Sequence record: OM456492.1
Length of the DNA stretch: 64,000 nt
Direction: 5' to 3' (one strand)
The notes under the pieces were generated by a model that had not been told where the DNA came from, searched no databases, and saw only the letters and a list, made by a program, of their open reading frames with translations. Positions within the stretch are counted from its first letter, which is position 1. Every line of letters starts with the position of its first letter. Below, one piece after another: positions 5,897-28,150 of this stretch. The translations under genes and the position numbers were made by a program.

Positions 5897-6103
5897 GTTA
5901 TTTACGTGTGTGGGGTATAATGTGACAATAAACCCCTAACTGTAACGATAACCCGAATCGCTTGTGCACAGTTAGCCACTTTTTTCGCACAAAAGCCGGT
6001 TTATTGTCAACTAATTTACGAGTCGGGGCAGTTAATATGCCTCGAAGTACAAGTAGTTGAACATAGGGTTCTTCTGCTATCATTTGTTAATGGAGATAAG
6101 TAA

Positions 6104-6313
6104 ATGAGCATTCGTGAAATCACCGCAGGCAGCGACGTTTCTGGTCTGGTAGAAGCAGGCACCGTTCAGGTTTCTGGACTGAGCACCGTTACCGAAGTTA
6201 CCGAAGCGCTGGCTAAGAAAGCCGAAGCTGAAGGCGGCGTAGCATTCAAAGTTACCGCTTGTGGCGGCAACAACAAAATGTTCGGCAACGCGATCTATTA
6301 CGTAAACGCGTAA
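6104..6313 (+). CDS. DUF1471 (YdgH/BhsA/McbA-like) domain protein lacking a signal peptide
   Basis: GTVQVSGLST...LAKKAEAEGGVAFKVT...NNKMFGNAIYY closely follows the BhsA/YhcN domain pattern. Confidence 0.75.
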   Translation: MSIREITAGSDVSGLVEAGTVQVSGLSTVTEVTEALAKKAEAEGGVAFKVTACGGNNKMFGNAIYYVNA

Positions 6314-6326
6314 TCAGCCTGCAGGC

Positions 6327-6384
6327 AAAAAAAGATATAGGTACCCTACTCCCGTTGGGAGTAGGGTTTACCTTTTATTTTTTT
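6327..6384. terminator. Bidirectional intrinsic terminator
   Basis: CCCTACTCC/GGAGTAGGG stem flanked by A and T tracts between convergent genes. Confidence 0.8.
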
Positions 6385-7637
6385 CGTGCTTTGTAGCGAT
6401 GCATTTCAACAAATGGCTTACCCCAAGCCCCGAAAGGCCCGACGATCGCCTGCGCGTCGTTTACCAAATTCTGGTTATACCAACGTGCGTTCCCCAACAA
6501 AAAGTTTTCCCGGTCGAAGAATGTGGTATTGAAAACCCACTCCCCTTCTTCCCAGGTCGGCCAGTACCCTACACATTTACCAATACGGTTAAAGATAGGA
6601 CCTAGCGTTTTCTTCCCATCTGGGTCAGTCGGGTCTTTTAAATAGAACCGGCCCCAGATAGCGTTGTGGCTTATTCCGTGAATCTCTTTTTCGAGATACG
6701 GGTTGTCTATCGTAAAGATAAACGAGGATTCGTGCGTCAGCAACGCTTTTAACGTTTCTGAGTTACGAATACGTTGAACGGACGTAGGCGTACTTAAATC
6801 ACCTACACCGATGGCGTCCCAATCGTAATAGCGACGGGTTTCCAATACAATCTTCGCCACGCTAAGGTTTGGCAGACTCAGCATAATCGCACGGTCGCTG
6901 AAATAGCCCTGCGGCGGCAACCAATGCAGAATACCTCCGATGACGAACCCAACGGTTTTCCCTGTAATGGAATCGGGTAAGGTCAACATTAACGAAGAAT
7001 AGTAATCTCGCGTAGTATCGAGTTTGTTCATCGTTAAACCGGATATGGGGTAAGTCTTCACTTTACCAATATTCGCCATCACTAGACAGCCGATGTCGGG
7101 TGTGTTGGCACGCCGCACGATATTACCAGCGCCGGTTAAGCGAACACCCGCAGGGTCAGATTGGTGAGGTACCCATTGACCGTTGATGTTGTACAGTACC
7201 CCGGTACGGTATTTCTCTTTCCACTCATCGTCGCAGACTACAACAACGTCGTGCGCATCATCAGGATTGAAGTCCTGGGTGTAGTGGTACCCAGGAGGGC
7301 ACAGGTGCGTTTCTACGGGCACGTCGGCATTAATAGACTGGTAGTGTGCCTCAACGAATTCGAGCTTCGGTAGGCCTTTCCCAAGCGTTGGAATCGCCGT
7401 TCCTGACTTGGTATTCAACCAATCCTGCAGGGTGTCCGTACGGTTTTGTAAATCTGCCAGGTGATACTGGCTATAGAAGGTATATTCAGCACCTAGTGCT
7501 TCTAGTCCTACTTCGAAAAAGTGGTAGTTAGCACAAAGGGTATTTAAGGGCTGCGTGACATCGATGGTTCCCCAAGTTCGGGTGTCTCGAGAGAAGCCAA
7601 AAGCGCTGTCGGCCCGCACTTGATAAGCAGTAGTCAC
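6375..7637 (-). CDS. Hypothetical protein, probably virion structural
   Basis: 420-aa ORF divergent from the tail-fibre operon; function inferred from context only. Confidence 0.6.
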   Translation of the reverse strand: MTTAYQVRADSAFGFSRDTRTWGTIDVTQPLNTLCANYHFFEVGLEALGAEYTFYSQYHLADLQNRTDTLQDWLNTKSGTAIPTLGKGLPKLEFVEAHYQSINADVPVETHLCPPGYHYTQDFNPDDAHDVVVVCDDEWKEKYRTGVLYNINGQWVPHQSDPAGVRLTGAGNIVRRANTPDIGCLVMANIGKVKTYPISGLTMNKLDTTRDYYSSLMLTLPDSITGKTVGFVIGGILHWLPPQGYFSDRAIMLSLPNLSVAKIVLETRRYYDWDAIGVGDLSTPTSVQRIRNSETLKALLTHESSFIFTIDNPYLEKEIHGISHNAIWGRFYLKDPTDPDGKKTLGPIFNRIGKCVGYWPTWEEGEWVFNTTFFDRENFLLGNARWYNQNLVNDAQAIVGPFGAWGKPFVEMHRYKARKK

Positions 7638-15601: not shown

Positions 15602-15668
15602 TAGGTAAACCGCCCTTCCGTTATTGGGAGGGCGGTCTCCGTTTTATTACAGATTAGGAGTGTTTGCA

Positions 15669-20899: not shown

Positions 20900-22102
20900 A
20901 TGGCCGAAATCATTTATCAGTACCCGCTCGACCTTACCGGGACATTAACGTCGAACGCCGTTACGCGGCGTATTACGTTAGGTTCTGGTAAAGTTAACCG
21001 GGCTTTTGCATTTCCTGACGGAGCTTTCTACGCGGATACTTTCCGCTTAGCGGCTGCGAACAAACCGGGTGTCTACCCGTACAAACGTGGTACAGACTAC
21101 GAGCTGATTTTTGCACATACTGCATATCAGAAAATGACCAAGAACCGCGAAGTGGTCATGGGTGTGGTGGTAACTAACTCGGCCATTCCTACTGATATCG
21201 AAGTCTCTGCGCAAGTCGTTGGTGGTTTTCAGTCTGCGAACGTCGAAGGCATCCGACAAGCGATTGCGTCGTTGAAAATTGAAGACCGTGTGGTGGACTT
21301 CAAGGATCTTCGAAACGTGCCCGATACGTTCCCGTCCGCACCGACGTATAAAGACCTTGGCGATATCTACGGTTTTGAGTATATCATTACCGTGCTCGCG
21401 GGGATTAAAGATGCGATTAACTCCGGCTCTGCAGTACAGCTGGAAGAAATTAAAGGTATTCTGGACGGTCTGAAAAACGACTTCCTCGATGCCTTAAATA
21501 CCCACATCAACGCCGAAGGTAACGTACACAATCTCGACATTCATCAGGTTAATGGCCTGACGGAGACGGAGATTCGTGCTTTGATTCAAAGTGTACAGAC
21601 TGCCATTGACGCCACTATCAGAGATATCGGCGACTTAAGAGCAGCAGACACGGCGTTGGGGCAACGCATCGATGCAATTGTGGCTTCGTTAGCCGCGTGG
21701 AACGACCAGCTTAATGTGGTTGCGCAAAACTACCAGAAGATGTCGTTAGCATTAGCTAACCTTAATTCTCTGGTGTTGCAATTACAGAAGAAGGTTAACG
21801 ATCTGCAGTCTGCGCTGAATGAAACAAATCAGCGTGTCACGGATCTTGAGAATCAGGGCAAAGACTTCCAACAGCAAATTGATAACCTGCAAGGACAAAT
21901 CAACAGTCTTAAAACTCAGGTTGTAAACAACACCAACGCAATTTCGCAGGCAAACCAGAATCTGGCGAACCATGCGGCTGCGGATAACCCACACCCGAAT
22001 TACCTCCATAAACAGTATGGCGGTGTTGTGCAGGCTGCTGTTCACGTCAACAACAACCTCACCTCGCGCGACGACGTTCAAGCTGAAGCGGGTACTAAGT
22101 AA
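20900..22102 (+). CDS. Coiled-coil virion/tail-fibre-associated protein
   Basis: Start reassigned to the ATG with AGGAG RBS; shared N-terminal domain, long heptad region, HAAADNPH motif. Confidence 0.7.
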   Translation: MAEIIYQYPLDLTGTLTSNAVTRRITLGSGKVNRAFAFPDGAFYADTFRLAAANKPGVYPYKRGTDYELIFAHTAYQKMTKNREVVMGVVVTNSAIPTDIEVSAQVVGGFQSANVEGIRQAIASLKIEDRVVDFKDLRNVPDTFPSAPTYKDLGDIYGFEYIITVLAGIKDAINSGSAVQLEEIKGILDGLKNDFLDALNTHINAEGNVHNLDIHQVNGLTETEIRALIQSVQTAIDATIRDIGDLRAADTALGQRIDAIVASLAAWNDQLNVVAQNYQKMSLALANLNSLVLQLQKKVNDLQSALNETNQRVTDLENQGKDFQQQIDNLQGQINSLKTQVVNNTNAISQANQNLANHAAADNPHPNYLHKQYGGVVQAAVHVNNNLTSRDDVQAEAGTK

Positions 22103-22115
22103 CTTGTTTACGAGC

Positions 22116-22141
22116 CGGACTATGTTTATGGACATAGTCCG
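22116..22141 (+). other. Intercistronic 26-nt hairpin CGGACT-N14-AGTCCG, no U tract
   Basis: Directly upstream of the first Cys-rich peptide gene. Confidence 0.6.
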
Positions 22142-22167
22142 CTCATTCTACTTTTTAAGGAAGCGTA

Positions 22168-22560
22168 ATGGCGATATCTATTAAAGACGTCAGAAACCGC
22201 GTCCAGATAGTCGAAGCTAACATGGCGACAGGCCCCCGTATCGACGCGCAAGTGGCCTCTAAAGCCCATAACGCGGCAGACCGATTTGGGGGTTGGACGA
22301 AAACACAGCTAGATTGCGGCGGGACATGTTCTTGGACGTGCTCTAACGGTTGCTCGCATGGCTGTTCGAGCTGTTCAGGAAGCTGTTCTGCTTCTTGTAT
22401 CGGTAGCTGTTCTTCGACGTGTGGCGGTAACTGTTCTGGTTGTTCTGGTTGTTCTGGTGGTTGCAGTAGTAGCTGTACCGGTAACTGCACAGGTGGTTGC
22501 GGTGGCTCTTGTTCCGCAAACTGCTCCGGGGCCTGCTCCGGCGGCTGTTCAGGTCGCTAA
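22168..22560 (+). CDS. CxxxC-repeat radical SAM target peptide 1 (RiPP-like precursor)
   Basis: 49-aa Cys-free leader, then a core with 21 Cys in C-x2/3 repeats of Gly/Ser/Thr; adjacent to rSAM genes. Confidence 0.85.
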   Translation: MAISIKDVRNRVQIVEANMATGPRIDAQVASKAHNAADRFGGWTKTQLDCGGTCSWTCSNGCSHGCSSCSGSCSASCIGSCSSTCGGNCSGCSGCSGGCSSSCTGNCTGGCGGSCSANCSGACSGGCSGR

Positions 22561-22570
22561 GGGGGATTAA

Positions 22571-22975
22571 ATGGCAATTGGATTAAAAGAACTGAATAAC
22601 CGATTAAACACGATCGATGCAAACGCTCTAAAGAATACCACGAATGTGCAAAACTACATTCGCAATAAAGCTACGAATAACGCCGACTTGTTCGCAGGTC
22701 AAGGCCGTTCGCACTATGACTGTGGTGGCACATGCTCTTTTAGTTGCTCGAGTTGTTCTGGCGGATGTACTGGGTCTGCGACAGGTGGTTGTGGGTCGAC
22801 TTGTTCGGCAAACTGTGTATCAGGCTGTAGCAGCAGCTGCACGGGCTGTAGCTCTTCATGCTCTGGTGGTTGTAGCGGCACGTGCACAGGCAGCTGTTCT
22901 GGGGGTTGTGGTAAATCCTGCTCCGCAAACTGCTCAGGTGCGTGCTCTGGTGGTTGTTCAGGTCCTAACTCCTAA
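22571..22975 (+). CDS. CxxxC-repeat radical SAM target peptide 2
   Basis: 50-aa leader, core with 20 Cys; ends CSANCSGACSGGCSG as in peptide 1. Confidence 0.85.
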   Translation: MAIGLKELNNRLNTIDANALKNTTNVQNYIRNKATNNADLFAGQGRSHYDCGGTCSFSCSSCSGGCTGSATGGCGSTCSANCVSGCSSSCTGCSSSCSGGCSGTCTGSCSGGCGKSCSANCSGACSGGCSGPNS

Positions 22976-22990
22976 CTGACGGAGGCTTAT

Positions 22991-23197
22991 GTGATCAGTC
23001 TCAAGGCTATTCGAAACCGTCTCGTTACGGCAGAAGGCTACATTACAACCGCGCAGGCAAACAACTATATCGCTAACCAGGGCACCGTGTCGACCACAAA
23101 TAACCTGGCTGGCTTACCGCTTTCTCACTATAACTGTAATGGTGGGTGTAGCTGGTCCTGCAGCGGAAGCTGTAGCCGTGGAGCGGGGAATCGATAA
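22991..23197 (+). CDS. Short CxxxC-repeat target peptide 3
   Basis: GTG start with GGAGG RBS; leader homologous to peptides 1 and 2; core CNGGCSWSCSGSC (4 Cys). Confidence 0.8.
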   Translation: MISLKAIRNRLVTAEGYITTAQANNYIANQGTVSTTNNLAGLPLSHYNCNGGCSWSCSGSCSRGAGNR

Positions 23198-23219
23198 CAG
23201 AAAACGTTCGGAGTATTAA

Positions 23220-24107
23220 ATGAAAAACGATTTGCATCTTGCGTATAAAACCACATTCAACCACCCGCTGCATCTATCTTCCCCAGATTCGGTGCGTGCA
23301 CATCTCGCTGACAAAGTCAGACTGATTGCACAGATTCCTGGTGAGTGGCCAAAGGTTCGTGGTCGCTTCTTGACCGACAAGAAGAACTACACCGTAGAAA
23401 ATACGTTTAAGATCCGTGATATGGTTGCAGAGGCCATCGTTATCTTTAACGGCGATGGTAACTCTCGCGGCGTGTTGGTTGACGGTAAGTATTTCTTCAG
23501 TGAAGGGATTCTGAACAACAGTGTCGATTTAGAACTGATGTTTACACCGTTTGACGAACTCGAAGCAAAACCGATGGCGCGCCGTTGGTGGAGTCCGGAC
23601 TATCTGGGCTCGTTCCCTTACTACTTTGTACTGGTACCTGCCGATACGGAAACGTATTTCGACACCGAACCGTACATCGATATCGAGGGATATAAAGAAC
23701 TCGGCATCACCCGTTTAGCGGACATGATGGCGTATAGCTATAAGTTCGTGTGGGATAAAAAGCGTTCTGTCTGGTATGCGTTGACTGACGATTTTGAAAT
23801 CACCAAACGTATTCGTAAGCCGTGGATGCAACACCTGGTTCAAACCCGATATGGGGATTACCCGGCGACAGAAGCGGATTTGAGTAAGCTGGTAAGCTTC
23901 CTCTTAACGAAGGTGGATTTAACGAAAGAAGAAGCAGAAGCTGTTTCTGAGATTCGTAGTCGTTCGGTAACGTTGGCCGATTTGAAACGCTTGAACGAAA
24001 GACACGCCGACCTGAACAAAATTTTAGCTGCCTATCACGACCCGATGTTACTGGTGCCCGGCGCTAATGTAGACGAAGATCCTTTATTCGCCATTGATTA
24101 TATTTAA
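23220..24107 (+). CDS. Hypothetical protein in the rSAM cassette
   Basis: 295 aa, tightly packed between the peptides and the first rSAM gene. Confidence 0.8.
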   Translation: MKNDLHLAYKTTFNHPLHLSSPDSVRAHLADKVRLIAQIPGEWPKVRGRFLTDKKNYTVENTFKIRDMVAEAIVIFNGDGNSRGVLVDGKYFFSEGILNNSVDLELMFTPFDELEAKPMARRWWSPDYLGSFPYYFVLVPADTETYFDTEPYIDIEGYKELGITRLADMMAYSYKFVWDKKRSVWYALTDDFEITKRIRKPWMQHLVQTRYGDYPATEADLSKLVSFLLTKVDLTKEEAEAVSEIRSRSVTLADLKRLNERHADLNKILAAYHDPMLLVPGANVDEDPLFAIDYI

Positions 24108-24129
24108 AAATATACTGGAGCAACCTGCA

Positions 24130-25044
24130 ATGACAGATCAAGTAGAATCCAGGATCTCGTCTGAACTGTACGACAAACCGTCAATTCTGTCGGTTGTCGC
24201 AACTTCTAAGTGTAACTTAGACTGTAGCTTCTGTGGAGGGGCTTATTACATGGATAGAGAAGATACTTCTCGTGAGTTTCAACGTGAAGAGATTCTCTCG
24301 ATTTTAGAGAAGAATCCGGATATCGGTGAGATTCATTGGACGGGCGGTGAGCCGCTGTTAGCGCAGCGCAAGATTGAAGACTTCGTGAACGAGTTAAAGG
24401 AGTCTCATCCGAACCTCCGTCATCACATGTACACCAACGGTTTAAAGATGCGTAAATCACATCTGCCGTTGCTGAAACAGTTCGACCTTATCTTTGTGTC
24501 CATTGACGGCTACAAGAAGTCGGAACGTCCGTTTATGAACTTTGTAAACGGTGGTAATCACGAAGCGCTGGAAGTGCTGTACGAGCTGGACAACTATTAC
24601 ACCTGGGGTGTGATGACGCGTGACCAGTTAGGTGATAAACGCTGGTACGAAGATTTCATCGAGCTGCACCGAGCAATCTATCATTACCGTCCAGGTGGTA
24701 TGTCGTTGCTGTTTGATGCGATGATGCCGAAACCGTTATCGCCAGACCACGTCATGAACTTCATGTACGGGTATTGGAAAATACTCGACAATATCGAACG
24801 CCTTAACATGCAGAACGATTCTGAATGTGGGCTTGCGATCAGTAAAATGTTCGATACCGAGTGCAACACGTGCAGTGAAGTGCTGTGGCTTAACGCCGAC
24901 GGTACGCAGGAGCAAATTCAGAACGCCCCAGAGATATTGGAAGTCGGCTGTAATCGCCTGGCGCGTTCTATCGGCGTTGATGCGTATAACTACATCAACC
25001 GTGTAATTTCTGCTAAGCGTAAACGGGCGGCGAACAATGAGTAA
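24130..25044 (+). CDS. Radical SAM enzyme 1
   Basis: CNLDCSFC (CxxxCxxC), WTGGEP, YTNG and VSIDG motifs; short Cys-containing C-terminal extension. Start reassigned to the ATG with GGAG RBS. Confidence 0.92.
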   Translation: MTDQVESRISSELYDKPSILSVVATSKCNLDCSFCGGAYYMDREDTSREFQREEILSILEKNPDIGEIHWTGGEPLLAQRKIEDFVNELKESHPNLRHHMYTNGLKMRKSHLPLLKQFDLIFVSIDGYKKSERPFMNFVNGGNHEALEVLYELDNYYTWGVMTRDQLGDKRWYEDFIELHRAIYHYRPGGMSLLFDAMMPKPLSPDHVMNFMYGYWKILDNIERLNMQNDSECGLAISKMFDTECNTCSEVLWLNADGTQEQIQNAPEILEVGCNRLARSIGVDAYNYINRVISAKRKRAANNE

Positions 25045-26365
25045 CAGCGAACAGCAAATCCAGTACACACCACGCACGTATCAGGTTGTGACTAACCTGT
25101 CATGTAATCTGGACTGCGAATACTGCTACGAGCGTAAATATCCTCGTAACAACAAAGTAGCAGACGTGATTGATTTTATCCACGCTTGTTTCGAGCGTGA
25201 TAAAGATATCCCGAACGTCGAGGTCATCATCGATATCATCGGTGGTGAGCCGTTCATGCAGCCTAAACTTCTTTTGGCGGCCTTTGAAACCGCAGAGAAG
25301 TTATGCGCAGAACACAATCGCCCGTATATGTTCAGTATCTCCACGAACGGTACACTTCTGGACCGTCCGCTGAACAAAGAAATTATCGAGCGCTGGAAAG
25401 ACAAACTGTCTATTGGGGTCTCCATCGATGGTTTACCTGAAGTCCATGACAAATATCGTATCTTTACCACGACGCGTGAAGGGTCGTACGAAGCTGCGGT
25501 ACGCGGTTACAATTATCTGAAGAGTGTTGGCATCGCTGAACTGGGTGTAAAGGCGACGTTTACGATCGATACATTGCCGCACTATGCCGCCAGCATGAAA
25601 TCGTTAATTGACATGTCCGGCGGTGGTACCATTTCTGGTAACGTAACGTACGAAGATATCCTGCCGCGCCATATGGCGTTGGATATCGCGAACCAGATGA
25701 TGGACGTGATGGACTACTGGATTGAGAAGGGTCTGCACACCAACCCGCGTAACACGATTACACACATCATCCCGGATGGCCTGAACTTTATGGCAACTTG
25801 GGACCCGGATTGGCGTGACAAACTCTTACATGACGACTCTGTTCGTCTCGACCCAGAACGCCTGAAACCGTACTGCGGTACGTTGACGCACATGACCTGT
25901 CTCGGCTTTGATCGCAAGATTTACGGTTGTAACCGTTTCATGTCCACGGTAACTTCCCGTTCTGCTGTAGCAGAACTGGTCGGTCGTGAGTTTGTGAGCC
26001 TGGACGGTGGTAAGCTGTTAGAAGAGATTCAAACGCAGTACACCAACTACCCAGAAACCTGTTTAGGGTGTCCGATGAAACACAGTTGCGGTAGCTGCGC
26101 AGCAGCATCGTACGAAAACGGTGAAGGTACACTGGAAGACCGTAAAGCGTATCACGCCGAGCGTCGTCAGTGTGGTTGGACTACTGCGAAGCTGATGGCG
26201 GCGGAATATTGGTATCAGAAAACTGGTACGACCCGCGCATCAGATTTGCATGATAAATCCATGTGCTATTGTTCACGTTGTGTACGCCAACGTGCTGAAG
26301 CAGAAAAATTACAAAACGGAGCCCAGAATGAAGTCAATACTGATTCACAATTTTACGAAGCGTAA
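25037..26365 (+). CDS. Radical SAM/SPASM peptide maturase
   Basis: CNLDCEYC, GGEP, STNGT and SIDG motifs; SPASM-type Cys array (YCG...C...IYGC...CLGCPMKHSCGSC...C) plus an extra CYCSRC. Confidence 0.93.
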   Translation: MSNSEQQIQYTPRTYQVVTNLSCNLDCEYCYERKYPRNNKVADVIDFIHACFERDKDIPNVEVIIDIIGGEPFMQPKLLLAAFETAEKLCAEHNRPYMFSISTNGTLLDRPLNKEIIERWKDKLSIGVSIDGLPEVHDKYRIFTTTREGSYEAAVRGYNYLKSVGIAELGVKATFTIDTLPHYAASMKSLIDMSGGGTISGNVTYEDILPRHMALDIANQMMDVMDYWIEKGLHTNPRNTITHIIPDGLNFMATWDPDWRDKLLHDDSVRLDPERLKPYCGTLTHMTCLGFDRKIYGCNRFMSTVTSRSAVAELVGREFVSLDGGKLLEEIQTQYTNYPETCLGCPMKHSCGSCAAASYENGEGTLEDRKAYHAERRQCGWTTAKLMAAEYWYQKTGTTRASDLHDKSMCYCSRCVRQRAEAEKLQNGAQNEVNTDSQFYEA

Positions 26366-26894
26366 ACTGCACTTGGTCGATCGCTTCCTGCGCAAAAGCA
26401 AGCTGTACAATGTGCACGCAATTGTGGCAGGGGAAGACTTCACTGATGAAATCCAAAGCCTGTTGATTAAATACGGGCTGAACGTGATGATCCCGGTCTA
26501 CTGCGTTGAGAAAGGACACGAGTCTGTCGCGGAAATCGAAAAGCGCAACCCTGGCTTTGAGAAGCGACTGCTTGCATACCCACGCCACAAAATCGAACTG
26601 CTACGTCACTCTATTGATGAAGCCAGTCCTGAAAGTTTAGTGGCTTTGGGCTTGTCTTTCCCGCGGATGCGTATTCGTAACTTACGCTCCAATAACCCGG
26701 TTGACGCTTATTACACAGAGCGTCAAATCTTCGAAGAACACCTGCTCCCGCAGTTGGAAGAAGAAGAGCAACACAACATTTCTCTGTTGTGGGCCGGTAA
26801 CCTCGATCAGGACTTCCAGATGCTGGACTTCGGTTTGTTGTTAGAACTTGGCCTGATTGAGGAGGACGAATGTCTGTTACTGACAAAAGCTTAA
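26328..26894 (+). CDS. Hypothetical protein in the rSAM cassette
   Basis: 188 aa from the ATG with GGAG RBS, overlapping the rSAM stop. Confidence 0.75.
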   Translation: MKSILIHNFTKRKLHLVDRFLRKSKLYNVHAIVAGEDFTDEIQSLLIKYGLNVMIPVYCVEKGHESVAEIEKRNPGFEKRLLAYPRHKIELLRHSIDEASPESLVALGLSFPRMRIRNLRSNNPVDAYYTERQIFEEHLLPQLEEEEQHNISLLWAGNLDQDFQMLDFGLLLELGLIEEDECLLLTKA

Positions 26895-27541
26895 CGAACG
26901 AAGAGATCCGCGCCCGTTATTTCCAGCGTGATTTGCCGATTGATCGTCACGGTAATTTCATGGAACGAATCGGTGCGCAGGATCAGGGCCGTACAGGCTT
27001 TTGCGCTCTGCTCCATTATCATCTCATCGAAGGGATGTCTGATAAAGAAGCCCTGGCACGCATGAAGCTGTATGAGATGTCGGAGATTGAAGCTAACTTC
27101 ACATTGAAACGCACGAAAGAGTTTATTGCTAATGTGCTGGAGATTGATCTCGACGAAATTCGCGGGAATCTAAAATCTACCGCACGTTACATTTACGAAG
27201 ACGTGCAGAAGATGCTGTTGGAACTTGACCACCGCTACGAAGATGAGCGTCATGGTTATATCGAGTTTGAAGGTAGTCACTTTCAAGCCGATGAATCGTC
27301 GCGTACCATCCTCGGTCAATACATTCAGGCAGATACCGCACCAGAATACTGGCTCGATACGCTGAATACTAAGCACAGTCCGTTTACAGTAGACCAATGT
27401 AAAGCGTTGTTGGGCGCTATTGTTGCACGCGACCAAGTGTTGCACTCAGCAATGGCAGATAACAAACGTCAAATCCGTGAGTTAGCTGAAAAGCGCGATT
27501 ACACTGGATTAAAAACATTGTCCGAATCTCTCGGCATGTAA
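26870..27541 (+). CDS. DUF4376-domain tail-fibre-assembly-type protein
   Basis: C-terminal half G..FQADESSR...YWLDTLN...FTVDQCKAL...NKRQIREL matches the DUF4376 pattern of tail-associated phage genes. Confidence 0.6.
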   Translation: MSVTDKSLTNEEIRARYFQRDLPIDRHGNFMERIGAQDQGRTGFCALLHYHLIEGMSDKEALARMKLYEMSEIEANFTLKRTKEFIANVLEIDLDEIRGNLKSTARYIYEDVQKMLLELDHRYEDERHGYIEFEGSHFQADESSRTILGQYIQADTAPEYWLDTLNTKHSPFTVDQCKALLGAIVARDQVLHSAMADNKRQIRELAEKRDYTGLKTLSESLGM

Positions 27542-27544
27542 GCA

Positions 27545-27599
27545 AAGAAAATAAAGGCCCTACCTCCCTTCGGGGAGGTAGGTACCTTTATTTTATTTC
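27545..27599. terminator. Bidirectional intrinsic terminator
   Basis: CCTACCTCCC-TTCG-GGGAGGTAGG with flanking A and T tracts; ends the tail-fibre/rSAM operon. Confidence 0.85.
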
Positions 27600-27622: not shown

Positions 27623-28150
27623 TTAAACGAATCCGTCCAGTTCACCGTTGGTGGTGCTCAGGTCAGTTTTAACGACTGGCTGCGTTACAGTATAAACTGC
27701 AAGGCTGGCAGGTTGGTATTTAATGTGGCCTTCTTTCACCTTAACAGTGATGATTTTCTCACCACTGCTGCCGTCCTCGCGTGTAATGGTGAGTTCAGAC
27801 AATGCAAACGCATCTTCCGTTTTACCGGCGGCAATTAGATCTGCGTTGACAAAAGCAAGCACTTCTTCATCGGTATCCCATTCTGCCTGGTCAGCGGTCA
27901 CTGCTTTCGCACCGATGATGTTCAATGAATTGAGGCGGGTATAATGCAGCTCTTTCTCGCCAGTAAAGTTAGCGGATTCCGCAGTGGCGGTGATGGTAAG
28001 TTTGGAGTTGCGTGTGTCTCCGTGATCGGCTGGTGAATAGTCAGCAACAGCGCCGAATGTAACGTCAGCAGCAGTTAACGGACTAGACAGTCCGCTGTTT
28101 GCAGCATTAAACAGCGCGACGAGTTGGTCTTTTGCAGAGATGACTGCCAT
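27623..28150 (-). CDS. Virion structural protein of the paralogous tail family
   Basis: RNSK...G...YTRLN domain and C-terminal TTNGELDGFV motif. Confidence 0.75.
   Translation of the reverse strand: MAVISAKDQLVALFNAANSGLSSPLTAADVTFGAVADYSPADHGDTRNSKLTITATAESANFTGEKELHYTRLNSLNIIGAKAVTADQAEWDTDEEVLAFVNADLIAAGKTEDAFALSELTITREDGSSGEKIITVKVKEGHIKYQPASLAVYTVTQPVVKTDLSTTNGELDGFV

Follow-up and report, generated by a model that had tools for sequence, protein, structure and literature searches.

What are two radical S-adenosylmethionine (SAM) enzymes and a set of Cys-rich peptides doing among the tail-fibre genes of a bacteriophage? This question is raised by positions 22168-27541 of the 64,000-nucleotide stretch of record OM456492.1 analysed here (the window). 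The window is identical, at the same coordinates, to Salmonella jumbo phage SaP7 (OM456492.1), a member of the SPN3US species, and shares 99% identity with SPN3US itself, a model jumbo phage. An earlier reading made from the letters alone (the sequence-only reading) had described the segment as three Cys-rich peptide genes, two radical SAM genes, two genes of unknown kind and a DUF4376-type gene, and all eight are present where it had placed them. The evidence presented below leans towards the cassette being a phage tail-fibre maturation module whose matured proteins are mounted on the virion. A wider proposal, that a virion part stapled by enzymes is made by phages of four or more bacterial phyla, as a Cys-ladder on fibre ends or caps built with two radical SAM enzymes and a partner of new fold, is advanced more tentatively, at a little short of an even chance.

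The cassette corresponds to SPN3US gp166-gp161, and its eight open reading frames (ORFs) are all co-oriented on the plus strand, with ends that overlap or nearly abut. It opens with three Cys-repeat proteins that match the PHROG family phrog_6085: protein A (22168-22560, 130 aa, 21 Cys; E = 9e-40), its paralogue B (22571-22975, 134 aa, 20 Cys; E = 3e-41) and protein C (22991-23197, 68 aa, 4 Cys, GTG start; E = 3e-24). Next come a gp165-like protein (23220-24107, 295 aa), characterised by its AlphaFold2 (AF2) model and its conservation in the module, the small radical SAM enzyme gp164 (24130-25044, 304 aa) and the radical SAM/SPASM-type maturase gp163 (25037-26365, 442 aa). The last two genes encode gp162, an alpha/beta protein (26328-26894, 188 aa), and gp161, a DUF4376 protein (26870-27541, 223 aa). 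Upstream lie SPN3US gp170, gp169, gp168 and gp167, the homologue of the last (20900-22102, plus strand) being a fibre-type virion protein, by mass spectrometry (MS) of the SPN3US virion, that stands directly 5' of the module. The tight, co-oriented packing behind four tail-fibre genes noted in the sequence-only reading was confirmed, as the cassette follows gp170-gp167, all of which are virion proteins by MS, and its context is that of a late structural operon with translational coupling.

The three Cys/Gly/Ser-rich peptide genes are real, and the Cys-rich frame is the coding frame. A, B and C are paralogues with a common N-terminal stub of about 49 residues, and no further copy of this stub was found elsewhere in the window. 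A and B also have in common a long tail in which Cys stands mostly at every fourth residue, while C possesses the same stub and junction with only 4 Cys and no long tail. In the repeat unit Cys is followed by Ser or Thr (77-78% of units), next by Gly (about 60%) and finally by Gly, Ser or Thr. The tails contain virtually no Asp or Glu and almost no tryptic sites. Each of the three genes is preceded by a Shine-Dalgarno site. Comparison of peptide A with the 80%-identical Erwinia phage pEa_SNUABM_29 gave 17, 6 and 58 substitutions at codon positions 1, 2 and 3 (n=81), and against the same phage the ratio of nonsynonymous to synonymous substitution rates (dN/dS) in the Cys frame was 0.07 for A and 0.05 for C, as against 1.6-2.5 in the two other frames. 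The order and frame of the three ORFs are kept in Seoulvirus, Erskinevirus, Derbicusvirus and Wellingtonvirus, which is true of the Cys frame only.

The repeats are open in several frames, and the public annotations of these phages do not include the true genes A and B. More specifically, off-frame ORFs are annotated across the repeats in SaP7 and as SPN3US gp166 (22358-22570, 22644-22979 and 22716-22979), and opposite-strand ORFs are annotated over them in the pEa_SNUABM_29 and Phobos records. These publicly annotated ORFs, both the off-frame set and the Erwinia opposite-strand ORFs, were rejected as genes, their length and position not being conserved and their dN/dS being about 2. A collection of 15 billion proteins contains neither A nor B as an exact sequence; C is present there, and it is annotated as a hypothetical protein in many assemblies. 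PHROGs itself holds the Cys-repeat family with function unknown, and PF27846 (precomputed matches) recognises a fused relative at locus L010 and, weakly, one at L057.

Both enzymes are members of the radical SAM superfamily, scoring 58.6 bits (gp164) and 55.6 bits (gp163) on PF04055 against a gathering cut-off of 29.5, and the CX3CX2C motif is conserved in both families. In gp163 this motif occupies residues 23-30, and a further seven Cys, those of the auxiliary array, do not vary among 19 relatives at 32-100% identity. The protein also aligns over its full length with the TIGR04115 and PapB SPASM maturase models. The full SPASM Cys array that had been claimed for this enzyme is therefore borne out by these seven invariant residues, whereas the corresponding family model is not: in a Pfam scan of the window proteins at E up to 0.1, gp163 matched PF04055 and PF13353 and gave no match to PF13186 (SPASM). 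Its top NCBIfam matches are TIGR04115 (125.6 bits) and then the PapB family NF047865 (113.6 bits, residues 22-357), with other peptide-maturase families, geopeptide and HxsB, also among the top matches, and its best PDB match is CteB (5WGG, E = 3e-10). From these family matches and the match to CteB, gp163 is best regarded as a SPASM-type peptide or protein maturase, one that belongs to no curated family. Because the radical SAM core begins directly at the N-terminus, gp163 has no N-terminal recognition domain of the RiPP recognition element (RRE) type, RiPP denoting ribosomally synthesised and post-translationally modified peptides.

The smaller enzyme, gp164, is read as 304 aa from the ATG at 24130, which has a ribosome-binding site before it, the ORF itself opening at a TTG at 24094. 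In addition to CX3CX2C it possesses three conserved C-terminal Cys in a twitch-domain-like arrangement, which, judged from sequence, would suffice for one auxiliary site. In two metagenomic SPN3US-like phages a 303-aa paralogue of gp164 is inserted between A and B as a third radical SAM gene (L014 3542-4453 and L029 3543-4454).

The TIGR04115 maturases and their TIGR04114 targets, which the sequence-only reading had named, are indeed the top NCBIfam matches, at scores below the family cut-offs: 125.6 bits against 350 for gp163, and 18.5, 17.1 and 13.7 bits against 20 for the peptides, for which TIGR04114 is the sole NCBIfam match. Like the present module, TIGR04115/TIGR04114 pairs a SPASM-type radical SAM enzyme with a protein repeating Cys at every fourth residue. 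The gp163 clade differs in that it always has a second, small radical SAM enzyme and a gp165-like protein, and in lacking some 20-30 extra N-terminal residues found in true TIGR04115 members. The relatives P0085, P0093 and P0111 score 140-157 bits on the TIGR04115 model. Viral contigs also carry true TIGR04115 members, above the cut-off, next to Cys-repeat proteins (L033, 416 bits; L036, 352 bits). At L033, around 5900-6925, the Cys-repeat ORF upstream of the maturase is broken by two in-frame stops, which could reflect stop-codon recoding or sequence errors. To our knowledge no product or function has been defined for TIGR04114 and TIGR04115, and no paper describing the CXXX-repeat families was found in the open literature.

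The third component, gp165, is confidently predicted to have a new fold. Its AF2 model (pLDDT 88, pTM 0.84) retrieved only its own orthologue in fold searches of the PDB and of the BFVD predicted viral structures, and its sequence gave no Pfam, NCBIfam or PDB match. Assignments of gp165 as an RRE, a protease or a known chaperone were considered and dropped, as no family, sequence or fold match was obtained for any of them. A gp165 profile run against 1.84 billion representative proteins matched 47 clusters.

The distribution of these genes among other phages is revealing of how closely they belong together. A protein search with gp163 returned a phage clade with identities of 47-100% and a second tier with 32-39%, and the loci then examined comprised second-tier contigs, IMG/VR relatives and bacterial genomes. 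A four-part module, consisting of a Cys-repeat protein, a gp165-like protein, a small radical SAM enzyme and a SPASM radical SAM enzyme, is present in all 24 of the SPN3US-like loci (four genera). The module is also found in 11 unrelated phage or prophage lineages (L009/L050, L010/11/31, L012, L032, L051-L054, L055, L056 and L057). Every examined locus whose gp163 relative is at least 32% identical carries both a Cys-repeat ORF and a second radical SAM gene, and a gp165-like gene was detected in the module at all examined loci but L010. The gp165-profile search provides a test of co-occurrence independent of the gp163 marker, and at 3 of 3 distant loci reached by this route (L055, L056 and L057) a Cys-repeat ORF stands before the gp165-like gene and two radical SAM genes after it. 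All of these modules are placed within tail or lysis gene blocks. Homologous enzymes occurring apart from such peptides, which would have spoken against the proposed pairing, were not encountered, co-occurrence being complete at the loci examined, and this supports the suggestion that the Cys-rich peptides are the targets of the radical SAM enzymes.

In several of these lineages the Cys repeat is not a separate peptide at all. Rather, phrog_6085 matches the C-termini of fused proteins of 245-568 aa. The repeat follows phage-tail repeats in a 302-aa protein of a Deferribacter prophage (L009) and in a 257-aa protein of a Desulfoluna prophage (L051); it forms the C-terminus of a 568-aa protein encoded next to a T4 gp13-like neck gene on a phage contig of 213 kb (L010), of a collagen-like protein of 401 aa with matches to tail-fibre PHROGs (L032), and of a 271-aa protein whose N-terminus passes the PF12571 tail-collar-fibre model (24.2 against 23 bits; L012). 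The L051 and L012 proteins in addition give weak matches to PHROG tail-fibre families. In a Synergistaceae genome (L054) the repeat ends a 475-aa coiled-coil protein, with a lysin gene downstream. Elsewhere (L052, L053 and L056) the repeat is a separate small ORF after a T7-type fibre gene, the fibre gene directly upstream of the peptide in L052 scoring 29.8 bits on PF03906 against a cut-off of 25.2. In two Thalassospiraceae genomes and in L056 this separate ORF encodes 76-79 aa, and in L056 it was missed by the gene finder. The junction is itself conserved: about 25 residues before the first Cys, together with the first three Cys and a Trp between them, are common to the window peptides and 6 of the 11 lineages, as when residues 37-59 of peptide B are aligned with L009, L010, L032, L051, L054 and L055. 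If a tail-fibre protein is taken as one that has a fibre domain or is fused to such a domain, and is encoded in a block of tail genes, then the relatives are, to judge by their sequences, tail-fibre proteins. The fibre fusions, and a module that has no protease or exporter, support the view that the products would be virion components rather than secreted bacteriocins.

On the proposed mechanism, the substrates would be proteins with Cys-repeat tails, namely the mini-proteins in SPN3US-like phages and full fibre proteins elsewhere. Within the host cytoplasm the tail would be modified by gp163, which as a SPASM-type enzyme would hold three Fe-S clusters, and by gp164 with its one auxiliary site, and because gp163 has no N-terminal recognition domain, the substrate would probably be held or presented by gp165. 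By analogy with the nearest characterised enzymes, the most likely chemistry would be iterative Cys-to-carbon thioether stapling, in which a 5'-deoxyadenosyl radical would strip a neighbouring residue of a hydrogen and the carbon radical would be trapped by the sulfur of Cys. The two enzymes might make two types of link, or the junction and the repeats might be handled separately. In this manner a floppy Gly/Ser/Thr-rich tail would become a rod or solenoid laddered by covalent links and stable in the extracellular environment, with thioethers in place of disulfides, which cannot form in the reducing cytoplasm. The matured proteins would then be attached to the virion, a plausible site being the distal end of the gp167 fibre, with gp161 (DUF4376) and gp162 serving as possible lineage-specific assembly helpers.

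The distribution of gp167 is relevant to this last step. Full-length homologues of gp167 occur in 64 phage records and full-length gp163 likewise in 64, a comparison of counts alone. More distant jumbo phages (Goslar, PhiPA3, RSL2 and Serratia phages) match only the N-terminal half of gp167 (about 55-65%) and are absent from the gp163 matches, the C-terminal part being limited to the cassette-bearing group. Because it travels with the cassette, the C-terminal half of gp167 is proposed as the docking partner of the matured proteins. The homologue of the N-terminal half in Goslar, gp25 (L058), is a fibre protein of the Peptidase_S74 type that has been detected in virions of that phage.

Several observations weigh against a fibre-maturation role. 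The repeat core contains no Asp or Glu, the usual acceptors in ranthipeptides; no curated maturase family has a cut-off that gp163 reaches; the adaptor role of gp165 is a guess, since no RRE-like fold is present; and A, B and C show no recognisable fibre domain of their own, having only the stub and junction where the relatives have one. A further point concerns the SPN3US virion proteome of 86 proteins, which includes gp167-gp173 and gp160 and in which gp168-170 were named as baseplate or tail-fibre candidates (PMC5694885), and in which gp161-gp166 were not detected (PMC5694885). The SPN3US annotation, on which such searches draw, is without the true Cys-repeat ORFs, and stapled peptides would also escape notice under the settings of a later SPN3US study, in which carbamidomethylation of Cys was a fixed modification. 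On these grounds, and because the Cys tails offer almost no tryptic sites, the absence from the proteome is weak evidence against incorporation.

The same absence speaks for an alternative explanation, in which the tails are transient fibre-assembly devices, either chaperone-like or serving as a trimerisation or metal scaffold, that are missing from the mature virion, with the radical SAM enzymes, gp165, gp162 and gp161 as assembly factors. The tail is C-terminal, as are the auto-chaperone domains of fibres (the Goslar homologue of the gp167 N-terminal half ends in Peptidase_S74), and DUF4376 and "tail assembly chaperone" genes lie nearby. However, the module has no protease or self-cleaving domain, the long repeats are under strong purifying selection, three separate mini-proteins would be odd for a chaperone, and the proteome was searched with an annotation that lacks these ORFs. 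This explanation survives best among the alternatives and is nonetheless judged unlikely.

A second alternative is that of a classical RiPP, in which the stub is a leader and the cores, freed at lysis or retained within the cell, act as an antimicrobial, a signal or an anti-defence agent, the tail context being incidental. The layout does resemble leader plus core, three paralogous precursors are typical of RiPP clusters, and the enzyme families nearest to gp163 are RiPP maturases. A distant relative moreover resides in just such a setting: on the viral contig L034 (5345-11459), a 737-aa relative of gp163 (27% identity over the aligned segment) is encoded together with a Cys-rich peptide of 49 aa and ABC transporters. 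Such a classical peptide cluster makes plain what is missing from the phage module. The sequence-only reading had noted the want of an exporter, protease or immunity gene, and Pfam, NCBIfam and PHROG scans of the cassette products uphold this; no RRE, peptidase or transporter family was found in the eight products by the same scans, and the cassette does not classify as a RiPP cluster. Neither leader peptidase, exporter nor immunity gene is found in the module here or in the 11 other lineages, the would-be leader is a tail-fibre protein of 200-450 residues in several of them, and the module always lies inside tail or lysis gene blocks. Taken with these points, a classical RiPP is improbable, more so than an assembly device.

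Least probable is that the enzymes modify some other target (gp167-170, a cofactor or a nucleotide) with the Cys-repeat proteins as metal-binding or Fe-S accessories, for while Cys at every 3-4 residues could bind metals and the NCBIfam matches of gp164 are weak and generic, MoaA-, QueE- and viperin-type models among them, no substrate-side feature other than the Cys-repeat tail is kept in every lineage, the fibre proteins being wholly different, and the families closest to gp163 are peptide maturases with Cys-rich targets.

Comparison with characterised systems places the proposed fibre-maturation module more exactly. PapB and CteB install Cys thioethers with the aid of SPASM auxiliary clusters. 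PapB is a near-full-length match to gp163 and CteB (5WGG/5WHY) its nearest solved structure, yet both differ from it in important respects. Against the PapB model gp163 reaches 113.6 bits where 340 are needed, and acidic acceptors are lacking in the core, so that it does not classify as PapB-type; in CteB the radical SAM motif begins at about residue 106, as opposed to residue 23 in gp163, which has no RRE domain. The substrates of PapB and CteB are short exported peptides, whereas those proposed for the module are 68-568 aa and tied to tail fibres.

A cellular precedent for modification of a large protein exists in Methanococcus voltae, where CrpC, a SPASM radical SAM enzyme, installs thioether crosslinks on the large, repeat-rich Cys protein CrpA (PMC13692751). 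Like the window peptides, CrpA has a paralogue-shared N-terminal region, of about 47 residues, and no obvious export or cleavage, and its repeat region is predicted to form a beta-helix (PMC13692751). The two systems differ in that CrpC belongs to another radical SAM family (gp163 scores 57.6 bits on TIGR04463) and in that CrpA/CrpC is archaeal, cellular and tied to growth on pyrite, with one enzyme and without a gp165-like partner or a virion context.

Among phages, Peptidase_S74 (as in Goslar gp25) and the T4-type fibre chaperones and adhesins likewise involve dedicated genes after a fibre gene by which the distal end is built or capped. These systems act by folding or self-cleavage and not by radical chemistry, and neither S74 nor any known chaperone family was detected in the module (Pfam, NCBIfam and PHROGs). 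Covalent crosslinks also stabilise the capsid of HK97, whose isopeptide "chainmail" is autocatalytic. In the present case, by contrast, dedicated enzymes that are not part of the virion would act on fibre-associated proteins. No paper linking radical SAM/SPASM enzymes to tail fibres was found in the open literature.

The type of enzyme and the idea of a Cys-repeat target were already known from genome-based family definitions. What is new is the four-part module with its second radical SAM enzyme and its partner of new fold, the regular association with tail fibres in phages of Pseudomonadota, Deferribacterota, Desulfobacterota and Synergistota (assigned phyla), and the presence of the module, unannotated, in a genetic model phage. 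If the proposal is true, it would be the first case of radical-SAM (RiPP-type) chemistry in the building of a virus particle and would describe a new fibre-tip architecture, joining to virion assembly a peptide chemistry that otherwise serves antibiotics, cofactors and a few cellular proteins. It would also supply a function and a natural context for the orphan CXXX-repeat maturase families, and would account for three conserved genes that the SPN3US annotation either omits or places in the wrong frame.

The two genes that end the cassette are less widely distributed. A confident AF2 model of gp162 (pLDDT 90.6) shows an alpha/beta protein that matches phrog_7988 and is confined to the SPN3US-like group. 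Its fold matches are weak, to alpha/beta and TIM-like proteins, and include the radical SAM core of PDB 9gm3 (probability 0.95, TM 0.45); hhalign gave 48% probability against the small radical SAM family and nothing against the gp163 family, and gp162 has no Cys motif. It may be a degenerate remnant of a radical SAM core. Assignment as a reductase or flavodoxin was set aside, the fold matches being only the weak alpha/beta and TIM-like ones. The product of the last gene, gp161, is a DUF4376 member (PF14301, 36.9 bits against 25), and at the unrelated locus L057 a DUF4376 gene also adjoins the module.

Several transcription signals flank these genes. Just 3' of the gp167 stop and 5' of peptide A, the first Cys-repeat gene, is a stable RNA hairpin (22112-22145, plus strand; -20.8 kcal/mol, z = -3.55); it has no adjacent U-tract and could tune relative expression or transcript stability. 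The operon ends at an intrinsic terminator (27559-27582) with a 10-bp stem, 7 GC pairs and T-runs on both strands. The sequence-only reading had seen no U-tailed terminator between 7705 and the one at 27559; the latter was confirmed and proved to be bidirectional, whereas the first part of that statement needs some correction in view of a terminator-like hairpin (12 bp, 8 GC) at 15609-15636, in the gap between gp169 and gp168. Because of this hairpin the fibre genes may not form one uninterrupted transcription unit. A sigma-70 promoter scan returned fewer matches than shuffled sequence did and is uninformative for this reason and because these phages use their own polymerases. The convergent neighbour of the cassette, gp160 (27623-28150, minus strand), shares the bidirectional terminator and is among the most abundant SPN3US head proteins, with an estimated >300 copies per capsid (PMC5694885).

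Two further observations concern the public records of these phages. In 11 records of SPFM phages (LR535903, LR535905, LR535911-13 and others), the alignment of this region, at about 99% identity, falls into 40+ pieces and the annotated radical SAM gene and neighbouring ORFs are fragmented, which looks like a sequence-quality problem. Contigs of 239-244 kb that carry these exact phage proteins are filed under many isolate assemblies of Salmonella enterica and E. coli, and because such contigs are filed under isolates, SPN3US-like genomes are common passengers in bacterial isolate sequencing.

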